Source of the DNA: Ascidiella aspersa
Lineage: Eukaryota
Reading direction: 5' to 3'
DNA length: 64,000 nucleotides
Assembly: GCA_963924565.1 (NCBI GenBank)
Contig: OZ004607.1
Location: 25,234,001-25,298,000 of the forward strand
Part shown: positions 18,172-52,659 of the stretch, piece by piece
How the letters are laid out: the number at the start of each line of letters is the position of its first letter
Position numbering within the stretch: the first letter of the stretch is position 1
Program-made: the position numbers and the translations under genes
Notes under the pieces: model-generated
What the model saw: only the letters and a program-made list of their open reading frames with translations
The model's database searches: none
What the model was told of the DNA's origin: nothing

Positions 18172-21100
18172 ATGAATCCGACAAAGGTTTCCGGAAACTG
18201 CCCAACCTCTCAGCGTAAGTAAACTTGAAAAGACGTGTTCGTTTGTTTTTTTTATACGAGATTAATGAAAAGAGTCTGATAACAATTGTTTTTTTATAGA
18301 AAAACATTTTATAGGCGCGTATGATCTTTTTAGATTGTCACAACCAAACTTTGCCAAACCGAATCTGAGAGATGCGTGCTACAGTAAATTCCACGACGCC
18401 CACAAACTTCGTCACTGGGACGGAACAAGCGTTTTAAATAGTAAGTTGTTTGGTATGAGCGAATTACTAACGTAGCACCGGTTTATTTTTCGCATTGTGA
18501 TTATAAATATTATGACTAGTTAGTCGTTTTAAAACGCAAACAGTTTATCCGAAAAGTTTGTCTTTAAACTAAAGGCGATTAATTTTTTTCCACGATAGAG
18601 GAAGGGCTGACCCACCTAACGATGATACGTTGCAATTTTTTCTGGCAAACGATTTCGTTAATGTTATTCCTGTTATTGATTTCACGACTAGCGTATATAT
18701 AACGTTAGTTTAGTTTCGGTGGGCAAACATACATAAAGTGCATCGAAAATGGACTTATTGTCATTCTTTCTTTTTCTTTTTTTTTTAAAGCTTGTGATTT
18801 TTTGACTATACATACTGACTTTGTCACATGGACGCTTGTGTTTGAATACCTTACATAAGTCTACCTGTAGCCTACCACTGAAATACCTCGACCAGTAGTA
18901 CATTGATAAAAATAAATGTAAGATTTGACCTTTTCCAAAAAAGGCCAAGGCCGTGTTCGTAGCCTGCTTTATGCTTCCCCGTTAGATGCCAGCCTCACAT
19001 CACAAGAAAGCTTGTCCAAGCGACTGTCGTCGCGGGAGTTGCTTCGTCGAGCGAGCGTAAGCAGTCGTCAAAGGTTACCCAAGGTCGAACTGGCCTTCGG
19101 GTTGACCGACATCGACACGGAAAGTTTCCCACCTGTCAAAAGTTCCCGGGGCTTTCGAGGGGTGCTTTCTCGCGACTCCAGTCACGTAAAAGCGGCCTCC
19201 ACCCGAAAGCACATTGCCATGCGAGTATACGGCGACCAGATGTCGCTGATACAGAAAGACGTTCAGGTTTGTGCCCTTATTAAATAGGAACAGCACCTCA
19301 CGCAAATTCAGGCACCTTCTAAATCCCATTGCAATGATTATCATGATTAGGCCGACTAGCTGCGGTAATAACCTTGACACCTGGTGTGATCCTACAGCTA
19401 GGGGGGCGTCAAATGGTTCTCTACTGCAATATTTAACTTTTAGTGTACGGTAGTGACTTTATTAGTTCATGCTATCGTTTAGGTTATTTTTGCTTTTATG
19501 CTATTATTTGCTTGATAAGTTTTAGCTACTACTTTTTTAATATGTTTTCAGTACCCAAATCGCTTTTATTTAGCCTATGTGTGGTACTTTTACGACCGAT
19601 TTGGGTTACGATTAGTCATAACAATTTGTTGCAGTTTATGTATATCTCTAGGTATCAGGTCGCGTCCAAACATTATATTTTCTATGTGCATACCATTGCA
19701 TAATGTAACTTTAGTAAACATATACACATGACGAATAAGTCATGGTTCAATTTAAGATAGAGGTAAAAGTTTGTTCGCTTCTTCGAAATAGTTCTTCTTC
19801 ATCTTTTCTATATCTGAAAACATCCAAACTTAGACTTTTTCTGTTCGTGCTCGTTTATAATGTTTTAACGAAATGTGCATCGCATTGTGTGTTACAGACT
19901 TTGAAACAAGATAAACGTATTGTATAATTGTTGCGCTTCGGGTGAACTTTTACGTATAGTTATTCTATACACCCTTATAATCGTAACAACACAGCTTGTT
20001 CAAAACCTTTATATCGAGCACTATTTCAATGAGCAACTTGTATACCCCACATGCGTCATGCCTCCATCAGGAATTAACTAAAGTATTTTTATATTGCCAG
20101 TCTAACTCTAAAGATATGTAATCGACAACAACTGAATTGCTATAAATATAATGCTTGTTTAGTATTTGATGAGGGCGCAAGGCACAAGAAAATTAGAAAA
20201 AGGGTGCGATTCAAAAACGGTTAAAAAACACTGAAAGACGCTTATAAAACGGAAAAGGTCTTTACATAAACGTTTTTCCTGGCAATAATCTATGCTAAAA
20301 ACCGGCCATACAAATTTTTACACGTAAAAAGCAGCAGAAAAATAGTTTCGCTTATATGGAATTTCTTTAAAACATATTTGGTCTATTTTGATTTTTAGGA
20401 AGCTTCAACGATAGGCGTTAACTCTTTCATTGGCGATAAAGGAAGGATGCATTGCAGTTTGCCGTCGCTTCCAGCCACTAGGACACTAACCGCTAATAAA
20501 ACGCCTAGCTGTGGATTGGGAAAGTTTCCATTTGAGAACCAGTCTTTTGTCGATCTATGCAAAAACACAGCTTTCACGCCCAGATTGCCCTTCAACAGCC
20601 AGGTGTCGTTTAAGTCAACCACATGCTTTATGCCAAAGGTAAAACACTTTTTATACATGACAATATTTGCTTCTAGTTTGTATCCGTCCATTTCAACAGT
20701 TAGGGGTGCCAAATGGAAAATTCGTTAATTTAAATAACCACTTTAAACTTAAATTTTAGGAATATAGCCTACAATAAGAATTTATACAATTCAAACTTTT
20801 ATTTATCTATTGCTGGATAGTAACGTATGAAAACACAGGCTGTTGAACGTGTCCCTACTCCAAACGCTAAAATTAAGAACGCTAAAATTAATGAATTTAT
20901 TGATTAAATTAATCATTGGTTTATGTCTTGATTTTAACACTATCTTTTAATTTTCTCTCAGGATACCTCACATCAGGAACTGAATTGGAGAAGTTCTCGC
21001 TATGGTGCAACAGAAAATAAATCCACCGCTTTTTTTGCAACTTCCTCTTTAAACAGTTTAGTTTCAGTCGCAACGATAGGTAAATGTATTTTTTGTAATG

Positions 21101-38938: not shown

Positions 38939-40309
38939 TCTTAAACCATTAGAACGCTGAATGTCTACCAGGCAGTAGCCTATGTTGTTGTCTGGTGTTT
39001 GACATATAAGATCGCACAAGCAAACTGGAAAACAACAAATTAATATACAAGCGATATATTCTACCAGAAAAACGTTTTGTAGCATGTTCAAACGATTATT
39101 ATGTATTCAGCATATACCAACCGGCTTAAAGTAAGAACTAAATATACAGTGAACCGTCGGACTAAAAGTGTGACACACCTTGTTAGATTTCGGTTACCCA
39201 TCGTTATATCAGTTTAAGTTGACTGCGGCTGCCCACATGCTTAGCCAATACGCATTGTTAACGACGTGCGTGTACGTATGTACGTACGTACGCATTGTGC
39301 AATCGGTGGTGAAACAATGATGTGAATACGAGCTTAAAGCTTTCATGTGATCTAGAAAGACCGCGACAGGAAAGTTAATGCAGCTAAGCAATCGATTTAA
39401 ATCGGTTGAGTGCTACACCGTTAAAACAGGCACACTCAACTCGTAAATAGTTGCGCTGCTCTGCTGTGGTTAATATGTCTGTATAAGAAATGAGCCTATA
39501 GTCCGATGTTTACCTTACCAAATTAAGTTTGTATAAGTTTTTTTTACATTATTGAGTATTGTTTTAGCTACGATATAAAGCTTTCTGTTAAGTTATGTGA
39601 AGGTTGTTTAATATATTACAAAAAAGTCTTCTTTTTTTATGCAGCCTAATTACACTTTCTTTTGTCAGTCGTGTACTATCTTGGACAAATACCGCGAAAG
39701 CACCAAGAGTAAACTTTCGCTTTAGGCAACTTATTATATAAATCACAGGTTAACCAAAGTCTTAATTTGCACTTACAAATCTGTCAACTGATATAATGGT
39801 TGTAACTTTGCTCTATTAGTCGCAAGAATAAGGTCCTAAATTGTAGTGTAGTACAATTATGTTGTACTATAAGTATCTTACGAAGAAATCCCAGAAGAAA
39901 AATGGTGTTTCACGTAATGTAGCGCAAAGAATGACGATAACATAAGATGCGTTATTCAGTCACCCTAGTTTTTTTTTTTTCAGATAGACTGTGTTCGTGG
40001 ATTTTGAAATTCAGTCATGATATTTTTTGTTAAAAACTGATTTTTAGGCCTAAATTGGTCCACTTTTTAGAGGTATATGGCCACCTAATACACATTGGTG
40101 AAACACGCAGTGGCTGAACATGCACGCAGCGTACCCTCCCTCAAAGAAACAGCACAAGACTCCCACGGGACTAATCGATTGAGTTCAAACCGGAAGTGCG
40201 TAGTCTATAGTGCCTTGCTTGCTTTTTTAAAGCTGATTGTGCAAAATGTTATTTCAGCGTTTTATTTTTGCTATCCTAAAAGTATTTTTTTAGGTTCGCC
40301 ATATTTAAT

Positions 40310-41226
40310 TGCAAAAAAGATTGCGCCATAGTTTGGCATACATTTTCCAGGAAGCCAAGCTCGGTGCACGAACAAAGCAACCCTGGTGAAGCATTTTAGG
40401 ATTGAGAAAAAAGCAACAGCCTACTGAATAAAATACCTGACAAAACAAAACCAAACTGATTGGAAAAGCTAAAAAGTAAAGTTGAAATCTCCAAAAGAAA
40501 TATACTTGAATTCAACGTGGTAAATTTACTTCCTTGATTGCGGGTCTTCTATGATATTGTCAACGAAAACTCGGTGGTTTGCCTTCCGATAATTGTGTCA
40601 AACGTGGTCAAAGCTATGTTCGACGAAACCGAATTCGGCAACACCAGCACCACCGCGACCCCCAGCGGTAACAGTATAATAGTAGTCGGGGCGATAAGTG
40701 GCGCTGCTGTGCTGTTGCTAATTCTGGCTTCTGGATTGGCTGTGTATTTCTTTCAAGCAAAACGAACCGAAAGGCGTCTGAGGCAAGCGGGTGTGAGGCG
40801 ATCGAACTATTACCGCAACAACGCCGCAAGCATGCGGGAAATCGCTGAACACAACAGATCACAAACCGTCGACGATGACCCGGCGTCGCCCGAATCTTTG
40901 AATTCATGTGAGTAAGCTTGAATAAATACCAGCAACAGCATGCAAAAATAAAATGATAAAATAAAGTGTGCGAGGCATAAAGAGAAAAGCTGGTAAACGT
41001 TTACGTTTTGAACAGCACAGTATTATCTGTCTTATGATATTTTAAGGCAACCTATCATCATTAAAAGTTTCTTATTCCTATTTTGTTAGAAATTCACAGT
41101 TGCAAATCTTACAGTGTTAAACAAATATTAAGTTTAAACATTTGATATTTATTTTTGACTTCGCAGAACCGCTATTAACATTTTACCAGGAAAAGAAGAA
41201 TGCCGACTGAAAGATCATTTTCGGTG
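40310..41226 (+). pseudogene. Probable decayed paralogue of the CTLD-TM receptor genes (stalk, TM and tail open; lectin domain disrupted)
   Basis: ORF 40538-40915 has a Thr/Ser stalk (GNTSTTATPSG), a TM (IIVVGAISGAAVLLLILASGLAVYFF) and a basic tail like its neighbours. Upstream, TTC CAG GAA GCC AA GCT CGG TGC ACG AAC AAA GCA ACC CTG GTG reads FQEA-(frameshift)-RCTNKATLV, and TAC TGA ATA sits where YWI/YWV is expected. A possible last exon starts at 41167. Confidence 0.55.
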
Positions 41227-41419
41227 AATTCTCCGCAGGCCGGCTTGTGAATATTTTTTTGTTATTAGCTGCGCGATACACGTTACATTTAGCTTTGCAC
41301 TATTTCGTTATTTCACTAAATAAAAGCTGACGAAACAAAATTGCATGTTCTGCTATGTTCAACGTTTGATAACAAAATCCTAATCTATGAAACTTAAACT
41401 TTAATTAAAGTGAAATAAT

Positions 41420-41520
41420 AAAAAATATTATTAAAACAATATTTATTTTTTTAAATATTAATAAAAATAATATTTATTTATTAATAAAAATAATATTTAT
41501 TTATTAATAAAATAATATTT
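41420..41520. repeat. AT-only minisatellite (~22-bp unit TTATTAATAAAAATAATATTTA)
   Basis: Three to four tandem near-identical units read directly. Confidence 0.75.
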
Positions 41521-44500
41521 TTTTTTTTTTAAATAATTTGAAAATATATTAGTAACTTTACCCTAATTTCCGTTTTGTTAACCACCAATTTTTGCGGTTT
41601 ACAGAATTATAAACGAGCAGTAATGAGAAAGCTGGGCGATGCCTGTATTAAAGCTGAGTGATGCCGCAAGTAAAAAGTTTTGCAGAAATTCATGTGAGAA
41701 ATTAGATTCCACAGTGGCACTTGAAGCGAGACTATTAAAGTTTTGCATTGTGTAGATTAAACTTATATCGAATTTCAAGCCATGCTTTCCTAGAACAGTG
41801 TATCATATACGTAGCCACATAAACATTTATAAAACCATTTGAACAACAAAAGCCTCTTAAAGTGCCAACAAATGGCACGGCAAAATCTTAAATGCACAAA
41901 CGACAGCAAAACAACCTACTTTTCGTGGCATTTAAGAAGATAAATTTTCGGAAAAGATTACGGCTAGCATTACTATTTCCACTTAAGATAATGTTTAACA
42001 TTTGATTTACCCTGCATACACCGTGCGTTATTTTGACTGAGATCATTTGTTTTACAAAATGAATCCAGACGCACTGATACATGGGATGGATAGAAACCGA
42101 CAACATTCCAGTGAAATGTTTTGCGCGAATAAAATGTCGTGTACCGGGAACATTCACTAAAATATGAACGAGTTTCGACAACCGGATCTGAGGCAAAATA
42201 GCAACGCGTTTCACGCAAGCTGATGTTAACTCGCTATATATAAAGTTGCTAAGTCAGATATTTGCATAAGCGTGTATGTACTTTGGTTTAACGAGTTCAC
42301 TGTGGTCGATTTAGAAGTACATCTTTGCGAAGTACTAAAGCGGCAGCAAAGTGCCTTAAGAAATAAACTATTATTACGTTACAAACACAGATACAGAAGC
42401 TTTCGATCTAGGTAGAGTATAGTGAGCAATTCTAAACCTTTTTATATCCACAAAAAATGACATAATTACTAACGTTAAAGTCATATTACCACAATTTTCA
42501 TGTAAAAACCTCGGTTGTGTTCTTGGGTAATGTGAGTGAGAGTAAGTCTGTGGAATTTTGCCTTTACCTATATAAGTGGTAACTATGTCGTATTACAGCG
42601 CTGTTAGAACAATTAAGAAGTTACATATACGAGTCATACATGCACAACCGAACACTCCAATTGACTCATCAAACCATGCGTCCTCTTATTGGAGGGTAGG
42701 GTGTGTGGTATTTTACTAAAGTTTTATTGTGGTGAATGTTGGCAGTGCTGGATAAACAAAATTACAATGGGCGACATTGTAAGAACTAAATAATTACGCA
42801 GGTAAATTACTTCGCGATTTTGAGCTTAAAACAGAACCAGCATTTAAAGTTTAGCAATATGGTCTTGATTCAGGGTTTCTCAACAGGGGGACATGAGCCC
42901 TAAGGACCCATAGTAACCCAATTAAGAGTTACCAAAACTTTTAATTTAAAAGGTTTAAAATGTCACTTGTGCTGAGCGGCGATAACTTTCCTGCTGTACA
43001 AAAAACGCCGACTCTCTATTTAGTTGCTGGTCAATGGATCAAGTAGCATAAGGGACTGCTTCGCTTTTTTTGTTTTAATGCCTTTTACTCTTACCTGATG
43101 ACGTTTATAACCTGATGGGTTTTATAGCTTTCCATCGACAAAAACGTGTTGAAAAGCCGTGGTATGAATATAATATTGATGAATACAAAACAACACTTAG
43201 TAAATCATATTTTGCATTGTTCGTGCCTCACTCTGAACATTACATCGGCTGCAAACAAATGGTATCGTTTTTGCTGCTTGTGTTTCATGCTGTATATAAC
43301 ACAATTATAAGCCGACACAAACGGTATCCACCGGAAATTACGCTTAATGAGGGTTATAGCAGCCGGTGCGCCGCTAGAGCAAAAAACAACACATCATTGT
43401 TGTAAGAACAAGCTAAAGCGCGTTTGATAGAATAACTACGTATAGACAAATGTGAAATCTCAATGCGTTGAGCGTAATTTTTCTTCGGAAGTGTTTGTCG
43501 CAAAAGAAAATTGTTACACTGAAATATTATGGCTTGATAAAACTTGACATGTCGGTGTTCGCAACGGCAGTAATGAGGCCGCTGACATCACACTGCATGA
43601 TGACGTGTCGCTTTAGGGAGGTCACAGTGTATAGTGAATAATAGGCGAAAGTATACGTTCACCAACAATGGCACGGGTGCTAACTAATATCGCGAAAAAG
43701 CGGCGGATGTACGAAGCTAATAAACCTGTGTGATATGTGAGCCATCTGCATAATAACTGTCATGTCAGTCCTTACACAACTGCATAGCATACGGCAAGTT
43801 AAGACAGGATGGGCGCAATGTGCTTTAAGTCTATTGACAGCTTAATACGGAACAATAGATCACCTCAGCTTACTCTCCTTTTAATTCAAATGTTCGCTAA
43901 AAATAGTTCCAGTAAAGAAGTTAACCAAGTTTATGAATATTTTTTGTAAAAAATTAGGTTTCCTATTAGTAAGAGATACGAAGTTAACAAAGGACTACAG
44001 TTTTGTATATGGTCTGGATTAGCAAAATTTCACATGAACAGCAAGACATATTTTATATGTGGCTTGAGATGTTAACTGTTTGTCTGGAATGGTGTGGTTA
44101 GTAATAACAATAGGCAGTTGCTCTTAAGTAATGTTGAACACTTGATACCTAATTTCGATAGCCAATCATGTGGGCGAAAAGTACGGCCGTCTGATGTAAT
44201 ACTAAATGACGTAATTACTCGGACAAAATACTCCTAATCAAACTTAATAATTTGAAACATACGAATGAAATGTTTTTAGGTTGTCAAACCAAAATTTGCT
44301 TTTGTGTTAAAAAAGGAAACAGACTTATTTGGTTTTGGATCGGCACGGATACCACCTTAGCATCAGACGTATTGCCTATGATTCGATGTTTTTGAAAAAT
44401 ACAAATCAGTAATTTAAAAGTACACCACCGGGTTATAGTTTTGCACTAACCCATTTGCACAAGTTGACATAAGTATATGTAAAAGTGATTTTCTGTTTAC

Positions 44501-45161
44501 ACAAAGTATGACTATATAAAAAAGTGTTGTATGCAAACACGTTGTTGGCCCATTGTTTGATTAGCTTGTCTAAAGTGCTTCTGTTAGATACCAATTTATT
44601 ACGTTATTTGTAGACGAATTTCTTAACCTTATTGGTAAAAATGCGATACAAGCATTTGCAAAAATGTTTACCTTTAAAGGAATTATAATTCAGAAAAAAC
44701 TGGTTACACATATAGGGACCAGGAGTTTAAGGGAAATGTCACCGTTTTACTCTTAAGAAAACGTCATGGAATCCTATTAGTCATACCCCGTATTGTAGCA
44801 AGAGTTATTTTTGTGTTTTGCTCGTGCGCTAAATCAACTGCTTAAATCATGTCAACGCGTCAGTGGCAGTCGCTTGGTAATGCTACAGTTTTAAGTGCTT
44901 TTTTTCTTAATTTTTCAAAAGCGTTTAGAGTGATTATTTTTAAATGTCAAATCCATTTTTATTTAACAAAGAAATTCGGCACAGGCTAACCGCGTGTTTC
45001 TGAGCTATGTAAACAAGTATGCCGTCTGTTATGATACTGTAAACGGTACATTTGATGTTCACTAAACGAGTAATTTATCCGTATTGCACAAATACATTAT
45101 AAATATATTTTGTTTTTGAGCTTAAAAGCATAAAACAGAGTGCTAAGGAAAAAGCTAAAGA

Positions 45162-46995
45162 ATGTCTTGCAACGTAGTTTGCCGACTAAACGGATTTGAC
45201 TATCTTTTTAAAGAAGATAATTTTAAACAGTACAGAGATGCCGAAAACGAATGCAAGAAAACTGCTGGAGGGGACATTACCCTTGTTAACAACAAGCAGA
45301 TTGAAGAAAAACTCCAAGAATGTTGCACTTTAAACAGAGATTACTGGGTAAAAACAAGCACAACAACAACAAATAACTGCTACCGCTTGCAAATAACATC
45401 GACGGCTACATCGACATCATTAGATGACTGCAATTTTTCGAGACGATATATATGCCAGGTTCCTTACATTGAAACCACACTCGCTGCTACAACCGGTACA
45501 ACAACCGCACTCTCAACTACAGTACCCGGGACAAATGCAACTGTTGGTATCACAACTTCCGGAACGTCAATCGAGACACTCACTGACGCTACGGCCATGA
45601 ACGCCGGCGCCGTTATGGGGGCGATCTTCGCCGTCCTACTCTTGATTACGCTGGTCTTGGTGATATATCATTATCGCGTCCGTCGACTGACCAGACAGGA
45701 TTTCACAAAATCTGGAATGAAGACATGCGTCGTCGGCTGTTGCCCATCTCGAAAGAAAACCAAACCCGCGGATCTAAATCAGACTACTCCACAAGAAGAC
45801 CATGGATATTACAGGTGCGTGGGTTATGGTAAGGGAAAGACAAAATATAAGAGACTCCAGCAATAAGGTTTAAATATGGTTGAGATCAACGTCAGAATAA
45901 ACACTTTAAAATAAGACTAAACACCTAAGTCAGAGTAAGACCTTCATCGGAATAAGACCTAAACTGCCATAACAAGGCTTCAAACAATAGCACTACTATC
46001 TTTTGAAGCACACAACCCATTGTCCACTCAAACCCTAATCAAGAGAAAATAGTTCAGCGGCGTTGTGTTTAGTCCACCGCAACTAGAAAATAAAGTATAA
46101 ATGTTAGTAGGTTAGAGAAGTGACTCTAAATATATACAAACCCTTGCCAAAATCTCGCTACACCATTAGCAAAATGCTTCAGCTAACATTACGCACACCG
46201 TTCTAGTTCATGTCATTATTATAACAAGTCAATTCCAAGTCAAGTCAAAGACATAAAAACAAAAACGTTAAAATATTAAAATTAAAATTGGTAGGCCTGT
46301 CCGATTGTGATATTCAACTAAACTAAAAAGTAGCAATACTGCAACATGACAAGCAATATTTTTTTTTATTTTGTAAAACATATTTAAATGAAAATACTTA
46401 ATTTCAACCCAAGTAAAGTGATTTTGCCTGAAGACTCTATCAAGTCGTTTGAAAAAAGGACTTAAATGTACTCAAGTCATTACAGCACTGCGGCATTCAT
46501 TAGCCGGATTAGAGTATTAAAACATTGTCCCTGTTTGTTTAGTTAAATCAAAAAACCTTTATATTGTTGTATTGCAGTATTCAACTTCACGAAACCAATC
46601 AGGTGGCCAACTCGGAATACAGTTTCATTACCGACGTTGCAAGTAGGCCCCAATCCTTAAATCAGACACCGGACTTGGCGTCAAGTCGTCGCATTACCTC
46701 GCCTCCTCCACCGCCTCCACCGGCTGGAGCCCTTCTTCAACTAAGCGCCCCCTACGAGAACCTAAATGGCAATGAAGGCCAGCGTACGAGCGTTGACCTT
46801 AACTTCAGCAGTTCTTTCCCTCTGTCAACCGTACAGCAACCAGAAATTGGATCGGGGGTGACATATACGACGTTGCTTGGCGCGGCGGACGACGAAAGCG
46901 CAGAGGGAAGTGGAGTGTCCTATTCAACAATAACCAGGGTTATGAACCAGCCCCCTGCGGACGAGTACGCAACTGTGAATAAAGTAAGACGATGA
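45162..46995 (+). CDS. C-type-lectin-like domain, mucin stalk, single TM, multi-tyrosine (ITIM-bearing) receptor; exons 45162-45814 and 46578-46995
   Basis: CTLD pattern YLF..KQYRDAENEC..GGDITLV..YWV..NC..DDCNFSRRYICQ; Thr-rich stalk; TM AVMGAIFAVLLLITLVLVIYHY. A phase-2 GT-AG intron joins GYYS|IQ. The tail contains SEYSFI, a poly-Pro run, PYENL, VTYTTL, VSYSTI and EYATV. Confidence 0.85.
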
Positions 46996-48165
46996 CGCAC
47001 AAGCCAACAGAGTTTGAAACGTCGCGTAGCTCGTACAAGGAAGTAGGAAACAGCAATCAAGGGATTTCCAACTGCGTGATTGATTTTGTAAATTGTTTGC
47101 TCAGAGTCGGTGGTGCTCTAAAGCAGTGTTTCTTAGACGTTTTTTAGTTATAGTTTCGTTTACCCCGACCAAAATTCTGCATTTCATTCACAACAAATAT
47201 GACTGTAATATCTATATATAACGATGTTTTATAAGAACGCGTACACATGGGAGTACGCAAATAAAATTTCGGTCCACGAGCAGGTTCATTTTACTGGCAC
47301 CTTGATGATTGTCTGTATAACATTGATTTAAACAAATCGTTGCTAACGTTTTTGTAACGGGCGAAAAAAGTTTAAGCTTACTTACTGCAGCGTTTAAACG
47401 ACCTCGCTGCCCATGCCTATGACTTCCAGCTGGACATTAGCATAACTACTGTTATTTATATTAGAATGTTAATATAAATATAAATCTTTTCACCGCCACC
47501 AACGTTTTGTTTTGACAATATTTTCTCTCCCTTGGAAGTCTTTATGGTTTGACAGTAAGAAAAATAACATTGCTTTGCATGATCAAGTCGTTATAAAAGT
47601 AACCTTTAGAAATGTTCAAGTGAAACTGTTCAAATACATATAAGCATTCACGCGAGTCGTGAAAAAATAACAATCGATTGGTTGATTTTAACAACGTTTA
47701 ATTTAGAGGAGACGTGACACCTTAAAGCACACAGTTTATTGAATTTATAAATATGATTTTAGACAAGGGAACTTTAATGTTCTTATTTTGTCCTTCGCGC
47801 CCTCCTTGCTAACCCTTCACAACCCCCCTATACCTCCCCACTCCCCAGGGGTGCGTTTATCCACACAAAATTTGTCAGAGTTTACAAAATATTGCGTTTA
47901 CGTTGTACGCCATTTGGTACCGGGATTACGTGTTTGTCTTAAATGTCACACAAGTCGAACAAATAATGCTCCCAGGCGGGTCATATCCTCAACATACTTT
48001 GATTATGCACCAGGAAACTTACTCGAATATCACACAATAAACCTTCCCAAGAATAATTTGATACCAATTTAGACCAAACCTTTATGGTTTCTTATAATGT
48101 GTTTAACCACGCAAAATTTAGATAGATCTCGCAAAGTTTCGCGTTTATTATGCAGTACTTCAAAC

Positions 48166-48330
48166 AATAGTAAGCAATATAAATCAAAAACAGCTCCTCT
48201 GGTAATTGTAATTGTTAACCAACGTTTCGGCAACCTATACAAGCCGCCTTCGTCAGGGTGAATCGGATTCAGGAGCTGTTTTTGATTTATATTACCATGC
48301 CTGGTAGCAACAGTTTAAATAGTAAGCAAT
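48166..48330 (-). mobile_element. Short truncated Penelope-like retroelement insertion (pLTR remnant)
   Basis: 13-bp direct repeat AATAGTAAGCAAT at 48166-48178 and 48318-48330. Perfect 23-bp inverted repeat at 48176-48198 and 48271-48293 encloses the hammerhead. Confidence 0.72.
48218..48259 (-). ncRNA. Minimal type-I hammerhead ribozyme motif (Penelope-like-element type)
   Basis: Minus strand reads ACC-CUGACGA-A-GGCGGC-UUGUAUAG-GUUGCC-GAAA-C-GUU-GGU. This gives both core boxes (CUGANGA and GAAA), stem II GGCGGC/GUUGCC, a palindromic AACGUU stem III, cleavage triplet GUU and a 3-bp stem I ACC/GGU. Confidence 0.8.
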
Positions 48331-48425
48331 GTTTGTTTTTAAAGGGAATTCTTCGTACGTTTGACGCCGTTTGGTACCGGGATTAAGCATTTGCTTGAAT
48401 GTCACGCTATCGCCCGCAGAAAATT

Positions 48426-49674
48426 AGGGGCGCCTGCAGAAAATTTTCCAGGGGGGAGAAATCAGGGGCGTAACCAGAAAATCAAAAAGGAGGGTCATGA
48501 ATTTTCAACTTAGGGAATTCCCCTATTCTTCGTATAACGTTAATGAATAATGACGTTATAAAACAGTGACAGTATGACGTCATAGAATGGTGATTGCAAG
48601 ACGTCATAAGAAAACTAATCAGAAACAGCCAAATACGATCAGCAAAAGCGACCACGTGCGTCGTTAACAATCCTGTCAGGCGCCAGCTGCGAAACCACAG
48701 TGTGCAATCGTTAACTTCAGGCGAAAAAATAAACCAAGACCGTGAAATATATGTGATTAATTGTGGTAATATCATACATAATTCGACTATCAGCAGCGCA
48801 GTTTTCAAGTTCCATGAACGGAACTAGCGCTAAATTACAAGCACGCCTTTCACCACGTGCAATACTAAACGAAGATCGGTTTTCCCAGGTGTTATCATGT
48901 CACGTTTAGCGCAACAATTGCGCCGAGCTGTGTGCCAAGTCAGCTAAATTACAAGCTGTGGTTGAGGGGAAAAAAGTTGTGTCCATTGCACACTTAGCAC
49001 GTGGTCTCAAAATATGCTTAAAGAGCATAATTTTGCGTTAACCATCATTACATAAAAGTGAATACTTTGGAACGCGCACGACAGTCTCCATTATACCTCC
49101 TTTTAAGAATCTGCTTCAGTTGAACAAATGTCGATGTTACACCAACATCGGATATTAGCGCAGAGACCGAACAGCGAGGAACATCAACATACTGCGCCTA
49201 ATTTGACGTTTTTTAGCAAGAAAAAAGAAAGAAGGTTTGACTTAGCGTTGTCAGTTGTCGAATACACCCTTGCTTATTAGTCAACCTAAACAAATAACGA
49301 AGAGAAAAACTATCCAGGGTTTACGGTCGACCAAACAAAAGACAAAAAACGGCGTTTTGCGCTCGATTTTGGTTTCGCATTAGATTAAGTTGCGTGACCC
49401 ATTTACTTAAAAAGCACGCCGCTTCTAGCAGTTTGTTAAACCATGACAAAAACGAACAAAAAACGATAATATAATTTACAAAAATAGCGGGTAATAACTC
49501 CCGGCCCCCTGAATACGCCACTGGGGCGATGGATAATGGATAATATTTTTAAACTTCATAAGTGATACATATTACACTTAATACTAATAAACAAATAATA
49601 CTAAGAATCGCATTTTGAAATTCCAGGGGGGGGGGGGCAAGTGCCCCCCTTGCCCCTCCGTGCGGGCGCCCATG
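48426..49674. mobile_element. Nested MITEs: outer GGGCGCC(C/T)GCA-ended element interrupted by an inner element at 48463-49523
   Basis: Outer ends GGGGCGCCTGCAGAAAATTTTCCAGGGGGG and CCGTGCGGGCGCCCATG. Inner TIR CAGGGGCGTA / TACGCCACTG. Confidence 0.65.
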
Positions 49675-50452
49675 CCCCTAGGGGTGAATTGATAGCAAGG
49701 GGGTACAAACTAAAAATTATTTATTTATTAACAAATTGTTTGAACGAATATTTATTTTTAACTACATTTTCGTCGTAACTGACACTCATTATTTTATTCC
49801 TACCACTTAAGCTTAATCTTTTCTTCTCAGTGGTATTAATATTATATTGCCGTTTTTTCTATTAAGTTACAGTAACCCGAATGTGGCAGTATACACTGTA
49901 GCTATAGTCTTGTTAAGCAACCAACTTTTACTATATGAAGGTAATTTTTTTCGCGCTGTGCGTGAAAGTTTTTAACGATTTAGGAAGTTTGAAATAAACA
50001 TTTTCAGCTCTTAGGCGCCGTGCACGCTATATAGTATATGTTTTGCTGTGTGAAATAATTTATTCTAGAATGCCAATGAACTATTAAACAATCTGCAACT
50101 CACCTTAACACAGTTCGTAATCGTGACACTGTAAACAACTGTTTGTGTTCAACACGCTAATTTACTTAGAACAATTTAATAAATAGACATATAACATTTG
50201 CGAAAAACTTTTTCAATCATGTAATAAAAACAGACAGCATTATAATTTTGGGCATTGCCTTGTGTTCCATAAAGATCAAGACGGTGGCTTCCTGAAAGCT
50301 GAAAATATACAACATAGGTTGGATAAATAAAAAAATATATTGTGAAACAGTTGAAATATTCACTATGCAGTGTGCACTGGCCTAACCTGTATGCTTTTTG
50401 TCAGTCGTCTACCTCAGCTGTGATCTAGTGTACACTTGGGTAGCCTATACAG

Positions 50453-50694
50453 CAGTGGTGAGCAAACTTATTCTAGTATGGTGCCAAAACCACACAAGAA
50501 AAGTCTTCGCGGGACGTTAAATTTAACTGGTAATTATATTGTGAAAATGTATAACTTTTATCCTTAAACACGCTAAAAGCTTAAACACCATATTAGCGAG
50601 ACGTCGAAATATTTTCGCGTACATGTAGTCAAAATAGCCTAATAATATGAAAAATGGCCTCCTTCTCGGTTTATACGTTTATTGCCCACCACCG
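50453..50694. mobile_element. Old hAT-type MITE
   Basis: Ends CAGTGGTGAGCAA and TTGCCCACCACCG; degenerate TSD CTATACAG/GTATGCAG. Confidence 0.5.
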
Positions 50695-51673
50695 GTATGC
50701 AGTATATTCGGTTGAAGAGTACTTGTTTAGACTAATTGTGCCAAGGGACGTGGCCCAAATGTTTTAAGAGCCCCTGGTTTAAATAAAATTTTATATTTTG
50801 CACACACCTGACAATAGCAATAACGGTAAAAAGCTTTTAATAAAAACCATTATTTGTAATATTGAATCACTCTGTACATAACAGGAAACTGTTCACTGTT
50901 GCTCGTTAGGGCTTACTAACGCATATCGTGACAAGGAAATAAAAAGTGCCAAAGTGAAAGCTTAGGCCAGGTTTTGCAAATTTGCTTGTTTTAATGCAAC
51001 TTGCAGTACAATTTGATAAAAATAGCATGGATAGACGACTAGACGTTGATTAAAAATGTTATACTGACAATGCTGCATAGTAATTTTTATACGTAAGACT
51101 TAGGTAATGTACCTTACCCGTATAGTGGTTAGAGTAAACTCGTTAGACAGGCTATATAGCTCAGCTTAGCTACCATTTGTTTAATTGCAACTATAGTTTA
51201 GGCAAAACTAAAGTTGACCATATATATGTCATCGTATAACAGATATCACATAAAATGTCAGAATAAGTTAAATCATTCACCGCGTCACTTTACTTACGTA
51301 TTGCGTTTTGACCTTCAGCGTATTGCGCTTTTCATCTTGTGTGTCACATTGCCAAAATGTGAATATCCGACTTTCTAAACATACACTTGCACGGCCGACG
51401 TCCCTGTATGGCGACTGTTTTCTGATTTGTCAACAAAATGATTCTATTTCTTGGTCCGGATTTACAAAATTAATATAGTCGTGGTCGAGTATTAAACATG
51501 GTACTCGTGCGGAGTTTGAGTAGCGTACTCATGTTAAATACGTGTGCAGTTGTATTTACACAAAATTCGTCAATGTTAAGTTTGGGGAAGAAAAATGCTT
51601 CAAATGTTATGTGTTGATTAGGCCTGGAACCGAGCAAATATTTCGTCTTGTTTGTTAAACTAAATTTTATGAA

Positions 51674-52659
51674 ATGGAAATGGAGTGCAAGGTATCCAAC
51701 ACGACCTATGTTTTCAGAAGTGCTAAAAATTTCTCTGATGCCGTACAAGATTGTCAACGAATCCCAAGCGGAAATATTGCTTTCATGAAATGTAACGACC
51801 CCCGTAAAATAAGGGAAAAATGCATGCCAATCGGACAATTTTGGGTAACTTTTGAAGATGTACCACCGGACAACGAGTTGTGCTACAAGTATGAGCCAAA
51901 ATATCTTACGAAAAGTATAAGCGATTGTGCATACCGAATGGATTACATTTGCCAATACCACACAAATGCATCAACTACAACTAGACCTACAGCCGCACTA
52001 AACAATCAGACAGATAACACAGGCCAAATCGTAGCGGGTCTTGTGGTTACCATGTTGATTGCTCTGATGTTGGCTGTCTCGTGTTACTTTTATCGCAAGA
52101 AACGAGATGGTCAAGAGATTAAATGGCTGCAGAAATTTTGGTTCGGATCAAAAAAGTCTGATCCAACCTTTTCTGTGGAAAATGCTGTTGTTGAAGGGTA
52201 AGTTATCAAAAAGTCACGAACTAATGACAGACAAAAATGACAAAGTCCAAAGAACGCACAAATTAAGATTTATTTAAATATAAAAAAATCGGATTACCTG
52301 TATGGTTAAAATACAATATCATGTCTTCACAGTGTGTACAAGGCGCTTATACTGAATTAATTTTCCACAGGACCGGCCAATCGATTCAAATCGAAATTAT
52401 TGACGAAATGGAGACGCAAAACAGTGCCACTGCTAGTGACACAACACAAGACACAAACGACCAAGAAAAGGGTCATGAGGAAGAAAACCATGATAAATCG
52501 ATTGTAGGCGCAGAGCCAGATTACGTCGACATTAATGAAATTCAACAGGCGGTAGTCAGCAACGACCACGCTGACACGACGATAAAGGCAGAAACTCCGC
52601 GTTACAGCGTGGCCGAGAAAGAGGGTGGCGAAGCCATCTACACAGCAATAAAAAAATAA
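51674..52659 (+). CDS. Second CTLD-stalk-TM receptor paralogue with tyrosine-motif tail; exons 51674-52198 and 52371-52659
   Basis: YVF..KNFSDAVQDC..SGNIAFM..FWV..LC..SDCAYRMDYICQY; stalk; TM IVAGLVVTMLIALMLAVSCYFY then RKKR. Phase-2 intron in the tail, as in the 45162 gene. Tail motifs PDYVDI, PRYSVA and C-terminal AIYTAI. Confidence 0.85.

Follow-up and report, generated by a model that had tools for sequence, protein, structure and literature searches.

Candidate leaderless C-type-lectin-like receptors with tyrosine-motif tails in a tandem gene cluster of the tunicate Ascidiella aspersa

No living group is closer to the vertebrates than the tunicates, and how lectin-type and tyrosine-motif immunoreceptors arose in chordates is a standing question. 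The group V natural killer (NK)-type receptors (NKG2A/CD94, Ly49, CLEC12A, KLRG1) are type II proteins, in which an immunoreceptor tyrosine-based inhibitory motif, or ITIM, lies in an N-terminal cytoplasmic region and a C-type-lectin-like domain (CTLD) with a long loop lies at the C-terminus. Tyrosine motifs are also found on the transmembrane adaptor Cbp/PAG, whose human peptide ISAMpYSSVNK is a ligand of the Csk SH2 domain (Kd 0.5–1 μM; PMC5071372); YSSV has been named as the Csk site (PMC3492796). Within the tunicates, the tails of the Botryllus schlosseri allorecognition co-receptors, the fester co-receptors (FcoR), contain ITIMs, hemITAM-like motifs and a C-terminal “[A/D]VYxxV” core motif, and genes of the immunoreceptor tyrosine-based activation motif (ITAM)/ITIM pathway are expressed in that species (PMC12582321). 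Here we describe a cluster of three genes, A, B and C, in the tunicate Ascidiella aspersa. It lies in a 64-kb stretch of contig OZ004607.1 (assembly GCA_963924565.1, positions 25,234,001 to 25,298,000 of the forward strand), and this whole stretch is what we call the window. Genes B and C encode an N-terminal CTLD that starts at the initiator Met, a Thr-rich stalk, a single transmembrane (TM) segment and a C-terminal tail with Tyr motifs. The family is uncharacterized, and its members may act as immune-type signaling receptors.

The three units lie on the + strand within 12 kb and make up three of the five longest open reading frames (ORFs) of the window, the longest included. The initial annotation of this DNA had described three same-strand genes with a common layout of CTLD, stalk, TM and tail; this is correct for B and C, while A retains the stalk, TM and juxtamembrane parts only. 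Gene B (45162–46995) has a spliced frame of 357 codons with intact splice sites. Its first exon (45162–45814, 653 bp) contains the CTLD, stalk, TM and juxtamembrane region together. The compact CTLD (amino acids 1–102, 45162–45467) begins at the initiator ATG with M-S-C and draws its evidence from alignments, Pfam, PDB profile matches and Foldseek; in the translation it is followed by a Thr-rich stalk with an NAT sequon (45468–45602), a TM helix (45603–45668, Kyte–Doolittle 19-residue maximum 3.07) that leads into RVRRLTR, and a presumably cytoplasmic juxtamembrane segment (45669–45814) that contains CVVGCC (45726–45743) and ends the exon with EDHGYY (45795–45812). Frame analysis places a phase-2 intron at 45815–46577 (cag/GTGCGT...TTGCAG). 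The tail exon (46578–46995) encodes SEYSFI (46612), PPPPPPP (46702), PYENL (46750), VTYTTL (46858), VSYSTI (46915) and, at the C-terminal end, EYATVNK (46963), with the stop codon at 46993–46995.

Gene C (51674–52659) is built in the same way, with a spliced frame of 271 codons and intact splice sites. Exon 1 (51674–52197) holds the CTLD (amino acids 1–97, 51674–51964), which begins M-E-M-E-C and was assigned with AF2, Foldseek and VIA-align, and then a Thr-rich stalk and TM (51959–52093) with NAS and NQT sequons, the TM itself spanning 52028–52093 and being followed by RKKRD. The phase-2 intron (52198–52370) reads agg/GTAAGT...TTCCACAG, with the acceptor ttccacag/52371, and the acidic tail exon (52371–52659) carries PDYVDI (52519), PRYSVA (52600) and the C-terminal AIYTAIKK (52636), with the stop at 52659. 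Strong donor/acceptor pairs that keep the frame in B and C give phase-2 introns only. In gene C, the consensus GTAAGT pairs with a frame-keeping acceptor, and the alternative frame-preserving pairs have weaker donors. A nearer acceptor in gene C, at 52333, was rejected since it shifts the frame and meets a stop nine codons on. The same junction type reproduces the 396-aa annotated homologue from Clavelina lepadiformis, and a phase-2 intron is present in B, in C, in that gene and in the paralogue D described below. The proposal that ectodomain and TM share one exon, with a phase-2 intron in the tail, is thus borne out for B and C by the reading frames. Every search and every fold reported here used single exons; exons were joined in scripts only, for reading-frame tests.

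A feature that the initial annotation did not raise is the absence of a signal peptide in B and C. All 11 genes examined start with ATG-x(1–3)-Cys (MSC, MAC, MPC, MEMEC and similar), the Cys being the first of the framework cysteines of the domain. In 8 of the 11, an in-frame stop lies no more than 10 codons upstream of the ATG; in gene B, it is two codons upstream. The N-terminal 30 residues lack a hydrophobic core, with a Kyte–Doolittle 10-residue maximum of at most 1.13 vs 3.23 in a leader-bearing secreted relative, and the RefSeq and ENA models of the Clavelina lepadiformis members begin at the same Met. An upstream exon encoding a signal peptide was considered and rejected: the possible acceptors between the stop and the ATG are phase-inconsistent among the paralogues, and gene C has none. 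The AG dinucleotides in this interval could instead be acceptors for spliced-leader trans-splicing. In paralogue D, an in-frame upstream ATG adds 19 residues (MKVLNLFKLFGIRLHLCQA) ahead of the usual M-S-C start. Taken as read from these starts, the family is one without a signal peptide.

Because a basic cluster follows the TM, the N-terminal flank is acidic or neutral, the sequons fall in a Thr-rich stalk and the Tyr motifs come after the TM, we infer an N-out, C-in single-pass (type III) topology. The TM would then be a reverse signal anchor that exports an N-terminal domain of 120–340 aa (the ectodomain of B is 150 aa), which is unusual. The positive-inside rule, the stalk sequons and the position of the Tyr motifs all agree with the initial proposal that the orientation is opposite to that of NKG2A, Ly49 and CLEC12A.

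By its predicted structure, the ectodomain of B and C is a true CTLD. Pfam Lectin_C (PF00059) gives 15.5 bits (E 0.029) for gene B, which is below the gathering cut-off of 22.6 bits, and no match for gene C. Six long-form relatives (P0004, P0006, P0008, P0010, P0017 and P0020) pass the PF00059 gathering score with full-length matches of 28–34.6 bits, and these connect to B and C through profile search. Searched against the PDB, a profile built from this genome's four ectodomains recovers 18 sequences, mostly CTLDs, with weak E-values. A first AF2 run on 4 sequences was of low confidence (pLDDT 55) and was replaced by a run on an 18-row alignment, in which the gene C ectodomain is modeled with a pLDDT of 88.9 and a pTM of 0.79. 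The elements of this model follow in the order β-β-α-α-β-β-β-β, which is the double-loop order of a CTLD. Queried with the gene C model, Foldseek gives 23 PDB chains at E ≤ 1e-3, all of them CTLDs among the matches listed; VIA-align against 48,161 chains gives Z-scores up to 11.3, with 88–94 of the 97 residues superposed at 2.1–2.8 Å, and its top 50 matches are CTLDs without exception. The low-confidence model of gene B shows the same element order, and its top Foldseek matches are CTLDs only. The fold suggested at the outset is therefore upheld by structure prediction, by both structural searches and by the long relatives.

Genes B and C are homologous (E 2.6e-5) at 27–28% identity, and the residues they hold in common form a framework of C7, Y14-x-F16, A27-xxx-C31, G37, C55, W62-V63, C73, C90 and Y96-I-C-Q99. 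The initial view that the intact ectodomains diverge outside a Cys/aromatic framework agrees with this, the framework being invariant. All six framework Cys are retained in both. C31/C98, C73/C90 and [YF]WV are invariant across alignments A1–A3, the disulfide pairing itself being predicted from these positions; this answers to the CTLD pattern of an α1 Cys that pairs with the C-terminal Cys, a Cys pair of the β3 loop and a WIGL-type motif. In the alignment, about 35 residues between β2 and β3 are missing from B, C, D, P0001 and P0014 and present in the remaining members; in the gene C model, the β2–β3 linker is just 8 residues. Since the long loop, which carries the Ca2+/sugar site (EPN/QPD, WND), is absent in B and C, such a site is unlikely in these proteins, and they would be compact CTLDs rather than C-type lectins in the strict sense. 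The ectodomain tree is poorly resolved, with the compact forms on one side of a branch whose support is only 74/64 and with C on a very long branch.

The family can be traced beyond this locus. A profile search with the four ectodomains found 25 relatives among 1.84 billion representatives, most with the same layout. The only named relatives are two members from the ascidian Clavelina lepadiformis, annotated as “uncharacterized protein” and “C-type lectin domain-containing protein”. A word-indexed protein search gave no match with B exon 1 and only three close ENA relatives with the family alignment, and a literature search by accession numbers gave none. Layilin, chondrolectin and CD302 do not occur among the relatives found in the protein searches, the 25 profile relatives or the named Clavelina members; B and C are not conserved single-copy orthologues of layilin or chondrolectin, a case that had been named at first as one that would count against the idea. 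In this genome, the subfamily comprises four intact genes: B, C and two copies of paralogue D (D1 and D2; L002 and L003, C3:23786219-23805925). D1 and D2 are separated by 19 kb and share 99.5% identity along 3.36 kb, non-coding DNA included; either they stem from a segmental duplication of recent date or one of them is a duplicate made in assembly.

A sister subfamily with the same leaderless CTLD–stalk–TM–tail plan is linked to these genes by hhalign (probability 96.7%, E 3e-10). Its genes are single-exon, the number of NPGIVTQS repeats in the stalk varies, and the tail contains 3–7 tandem copies of T[DA]DVYSVVNKP. They occur in tandem clusters of two copies at C8:7940137-7946099 (L018 and L019, the latter with an in-frame TAG) and three copies at C3:38296574-38320279 (L020, L034 and L021). 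A separate exon at C7:27543308-27543622 (L022) encodes a Ser/Thr-rich stalk, a TM and a tail with four tandem VDNVLYGVSKVND repeats; no recognizable ectodomain is present on that exon. The clustering that had been foreseen is thus found here and in Clavelina, while the family itself is small in this genome.

In the gene B tail exon, all five Tyr residues fall in YxxPhi motifs (p 0.0002 vs composition-preserving shuffles), and three sites, SEYSFI, VTYTTL and VSYSTI, match the ITIM consensus (I/V/L/S)xYxx(I/V/L) (p 0.0004 vs shuffles). The same tail has YENL, a YxN site, and a heptaproline run. Paralogue D has two ITIM-consensus sites (p 0.03). The gene C tail has no strict ITIM-consensus site; it contains PDYVDI and AIYTAI, and two of its three Tyr are in YxxPhi. 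The description of the tails as ITIM-type therefore suits B and D but not C. No BLAST alignment is obtained among the tails of B, C and D. The gene B tail is collinear with that of a Clavelina gene, g3; across the entire exon, 24% of the residues are identical (E 0.009, from a database of small size), and the islands that the two share are the Tyr motifs: EDHGYYS[IV], SxYS[FY][IV]T[DE]V, [AN]PY, Yxx[IV] and a C-terminal YATVNK. The best conserved of all tail elements are the membrane-proximal EDHGYYS[IV], which is acidic and spans the splice junction, and the C-terminal Y[AT]x[VI][NK]K. P0001 and the Clavelina g3/P0004 type have EDHGYY unchanged, and P0014 has the near-identical ENHGYY. Tyr motifs are retained between B and Clavelina g3; gene C has neither EDHGYY nor a strict ITIM-consensus site.

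The main rival reading takes these motifs in another way. B and C may be endocytic, scavenger or adhesion receptors, in which the CTLD captures a glycan, matrix or microbe and YxxPhi serves as an AP-2 sorting signal for internalization and recycling, as it does in many endocytic receptors with a CTLD, instead of an SH2 docking site. The Tyr residues are in keeping with this: YxxPhi accounts for all five in the B tail exon, for two of the three in C and for YYSI at the junction, gene C has YxxPhi with no ITIM, and a mucin-like stalk with a single CTLD would suit a capture receptor. However, the conserved flanks exceed what YxxPhi asks for, with an acidic run before GYY, V or S at −2 and N-K after YATV; the sister subfamily repeats DVYSVVNK in 3–7 tandem copies; YENL and polyproline in B are typical of adaptor docking; and a compact CTLD has lost the sugar-binding loop. 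On this evidence, we regard a sorting role as possible if somewhat improbable.

The C-terminal motif takes the form YATVNK in B, AIYTAIKK in C and, repeated three to seven times, YSVVNK in the sister subfamily. Y[AT]x[VI][NK]K resembles a Csk-SH2 site more than an ITIM, as judged by its residues. Motifs of this kind become Tyr-phosphorylated in bacterial effectors, as in EPLYATVNK of BepE and EPIYAKVNK of CagA (PMC2999339). The tail motif class is identical or close to these effector motifs. The EPIYA-A/B sites of CagA and the Bep motifs bind Csk and SHP2, and the SH2 domain of Csk favors pY-[T/A/S]-x-[M/I/V/R].

Candidate partners are encoded in the genome. An SHP-type locus with SH2-SH2 exons followed by protein tyrosine phosphatase (PTP) exons lies at C4:19908433-19927669, and two intronless genes for tandem-SH2 tyrosine kinases of Syk/ZAP-70 architecture (601 and 606 aa) lie on C1 at 3.416 Mb and 31.716 Mb (L047:1119-2924 and L048:1123-2943). 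As a separate observation, very large arrays of PTP-domain exons occur at C6 ~29.0–32.6 Mb and at C8 8.24–8.48 Mb and 24.2–24.5 Mb; at least 159 matches were recorded, with 150 of 491 first-look candidates scored, and several of these exons have stalk/TM-like exons next to them, suggesting that a receptor-type PTP family has expanded.

These observations lead us to propose that B and C, together with the truncated A, are tunicate single-pass, leaderless CTLD receptors whose tail is Tyr-phosphorylated, docks SH2 proteins and delivers a net damping signal, a reading to which we assign a probability of about 50%. The N-terminal CTLD with its three Cys pairs would provide a compact scaffold for recognition of a protein or glycan, in place of a Ca2+-dependent sugar site, and would be held by an O/N-glycosylated, Thr-rich stalk that leads through the TM to a disordered tail split by the phase-2 intron. 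As the likeliest mechanism, ligand-driven clustering of the receptor would result in phosphorylation of the tail Tyr by a Src-type kinase, and the phosphotyrosines would dock SH2 proteins, namely, an SHP-type phosphatase and/or Csk. The data at hand establish the gene structure, the fold, the family membership, the missing leader, the enrichment and conservation of the motifs and the occurrence of SHP-type and Syk-type genes; the surface topology, the phosphorylation, the choice of SH2 partners, the inhibitory polarity and an immune role are what the proposal adds. The sites used would be EDHGYYS[IV], the ITIM-consensus sites of B, the YxN site of B with its polyproline, and the C-terminal Y[AT]x[VI][NK]K. 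Net damping is the direction suggested by the ITIM-consensus sites and by the Csk-type site at the C-terminus alike, and a Syk-type arm might be contributed by the acidic GYYS[IV].

Several points weigh against this proposal. Gene C is without both an ITIM-consensus site and the EDHGYY motif. Since each ITIM described here doubles as a YxxPhi sorting signal, signaling and endocytosis cannot be told apart from the motifs. The likeness to Csk ligands is that of a short motif and not of homology, with no match to Pfam PAG at E ≤ 10, and the search for signaling genes took in the SHP-type and Syk-type genes only. Translocation of a 150-aa N-terminal domain with no leader would be unusual, and the topology is deduced from sequence features. 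Finally, the RNA reads are so close to nil that they neither support nor exclude expression.

A variant of the proposal would have the CTLD placed N-terminally on a leaderless, PAG/LAT-like adaptor, such that one chain combines recognition with a scaffold for Csk and SHP, and perhaps for Syk at the acidic GYYS[IV]. Tunicates would thereby have made lectin-fold immunoreceptors on another basis than vertebrates did. Gene A and a short-ectodomain ORF in Clavelina would then be the bare adaptor, and the whole a functional analogue, in the vertebrates' sister group, of the NK-type inhibitory lectin receptors, with inverted topology and export that needs no signal peptide. We consider this arrangement unlikely.

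Gene A itself has an open frame at 40538–40907 (+) with a short Thr/Ser stretch, an NTS sequon, a TM (40676–40753) and a basic juxtamembrane region. In the six-frame pieces of the window, the family hidden Markov model (HMM) matches 40538–40912 over profile positions 165–236, that is, the stalk, TM and juxtamembrane parts only (E 5.7e-4), and detects no CTLD remnant upstream. By eye, a three-frame translation of 40283–40537 (+) shows possible ectodomain remnants (C-x3-C, ARC..ATLV..IEKK) in mixed frames with several stops and no ATG, which is weak ground. An internal ATG at 40616 would yield a CTLD-less protein with an ectodomain of ~20 aa. The donor GTGAGT at 40908 is phase 1 vs phase 2 in B and C, and neither an all-phase search nor tblastn with the B, C and D tails gave a convincing tail exon. 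Gene A is thus a truncated copy; the initial annotation had called it decayed, of which the truncation stands, whereas the decayed CTLD is weakly grounded, its remnants being seen by eye and missed by the HMM.

The Clavelina cluster has much the same composition: in a stretch of 15 kb, one strand carries three genes of the family plus a stalk/TM/tail unit that has no CTLD. That unit (L045:14157-14877), which sits inside the tandem cluster and is the counterpart of gene A, has an annotated product of 193 aa that starts ~20 residues before the TM and continues into a Tyr-motif tail exon, with no CTLD. Upstream of our cluster, the window ORF at 18925–19287 (+), which is unannotated and has no Pfam match, resembles the gene that lies upstream of the Clavelina cluster (L045:2824-3333; 38% identity across 64 aa, E 2e-8), which suggests conserved microsynteny. 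With a homologous neighbor gene in Clavelina, the locus looks old, with turnover inside it, in line with the tandem duplication, strong ectodomain divergence and truncated copy that had been pointed out at first. The remaining ORFs of the window give no Pfam match. Elsewhere in the genome, a cellulose-synthase (PF03552) match above cut-off at C5:19610700-19611167, within a 647-aa open frame, is consistent with a tunicate genome.

Transcript data for the cluster are scant. The gene B intron contains a high-copy repeat (window 46125–46522), over which the word depth in the DNA runs is 530–2670 vs 50–116 in the flanks. In RNA run X5, of which ~6% was read and whose tissue is unknown, the target 41150–47100 collected 16 reads, all partly aligned and nearly all on this repeat; about one sense-strand fragment falls at 45114–45330, at the 5′ end of B exon 1, and fixes neither the 5′ end nor a splice. 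These numbers could mean that the genes are silent or decaying copies, open frames with no present function, as could the truncation of A, the extreme divergence of C with its loss of EDHGYY, and the in-frame stop in one sister-subfamily copy. Weighing on the other side are the spliced frames of 357 and 271 codons in B and C, whose splice sites are intact and in which none of the six framework Cys is lost, the tail motifs conserved with Clavelina, and a pattern of single-nucleotide polymorphisms (SNPs) biased to synonymous changes; the RNA scope, moreover, is ~6% of one run. We therefore hold silent copies to be quite unlikely.

The polymorphism bears on a further explanation, that the genes are determinants of allorecognition or self-recognition under birth-and-death evolution. 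A tandem cluster with a truncated copy, very divergent ectodomains (25–28% identity between B and C) and C on a very long branch would be in keeping with it, as would the parallel cluster in Clavelina, a colonial ascidian, and the similar tail motifs of the Botryllus allorecognition co-receptors. Two DNA runs of the species span the stretch, and one has another haplotype. In the 653 bp of B exon 1, this second haplotype differs at 5 positions, 3 of them synonymous and 2 conservative (N44S and V190I), a density equal to that of SNPs in the flanking intergenic DNA (~8 per kb) with no excess of replacements. This is not the polymorphism of a hypervariable recognition or allorecognition gene, as far as one haplotype goes, and the allorecognition-like variation once anticipated is not seen. 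A further run, X4 (“organism B”), gave short pieces near-identical to the window (0–1 differences per piece), so it affords no cross-species comparison. With just four intact subfamily genes in this genome and a locus neighbor conserved in another species as well, a role in allorecognition is, in our estimate, highly unlikely.

The family is a concrete gene set in which the predicted orientation of the CTLD is opposite to that in NK receptors and no signal peptide precedes it, and in whose tails motifs of the Botryllus co-receptors and of the vertebrate Csk-docking site recur. Should the topology and the SH2 docking both be borne out, ITIM/Csk-type inhibitory logic would prove to have been recruited repeatedly onto unrelated chordate ectodomains, the family would be a rare instance in which a reverse signal anchor exports an ectodomain that is large and folded, and loss of the CTLD long loop would be documented within a single family. 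Should the motifs be sorting signals, this would be an ordinary lineage-specific endocytic lectin-like receptor.

The family can be compared with several known systems. The group V NK-type receptors have in common with B and C a CTLD that lacks the Ca2+ sugar site, tandem gene clusters and, as regards B, ITIM-type Tyr motifs in the presumed cytoplasmic part, and CD94-NKG2A, CLEC12A, Ly49 and KLRG1 are among the VIA-align matches of the gene C model (Z 10–10.6). In B and C, however, the CTLD, predicted to be extracellular, is N-terminal and the tail C-terminal, deletion has removed the long loop, and no orthology is seen at the sequence level; because their predicted topology is opposite, B and C would not be group V NK lectin receptors. 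Layilin, chondrolectin and CD302 likewise have one CTLD, one TM and a C-terminal cytoplasmic tail, but these are conserved single-copy vertebrate genes with a signal peptide and a long-form CTLD, whereas the present family is clustered and fast-evolving. Link modules and the intimin/invasin domain resemble the ectodomain in having a CTLD core with no long loop region. B and C differ in that the loop was lost inside a family of which the remaining members retain it, and in that the structural matches are canonical CTLDs and not Link modules.

The tails lead to other relatives in kind. Botryllus FcoR are also encoded by clustered tunicate receptor genes and have similar tail motifs, to which AVYATV of Clavelina g3 and DVYSVV of the sister subfamily correspond; their ectodomains, in contrast, are of the immunoglobulin superfamily, and the FcoR genes, some of which are highly polymorphic, are paired with fester-family genes. 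PAG/Cbp and its class (LAT, LIME, SIT) share the lack of a signal peptide, a single TM with N-out orientation (as predicted here), juxtamembrane Cys (CVVGCC in B) and an extended, disordered tail that has numerous Tyr, with one site that matches Y-S/A-x-V-N-K, the form of the Csk-SH2 ligand; gene A and the Clavelina ORF would be short-ectodomain versions of this plan. The ectodomain of PAG is very short, ~16 aa, whereas that of B and C consists of a CTLD of 100 aa and a stalk, and homology is not detectable, Pfam PAG included. In mode of action, the family would come closest to transmembrane adaptors and to ITIM- or Csk-recruiting immunoreceptors.

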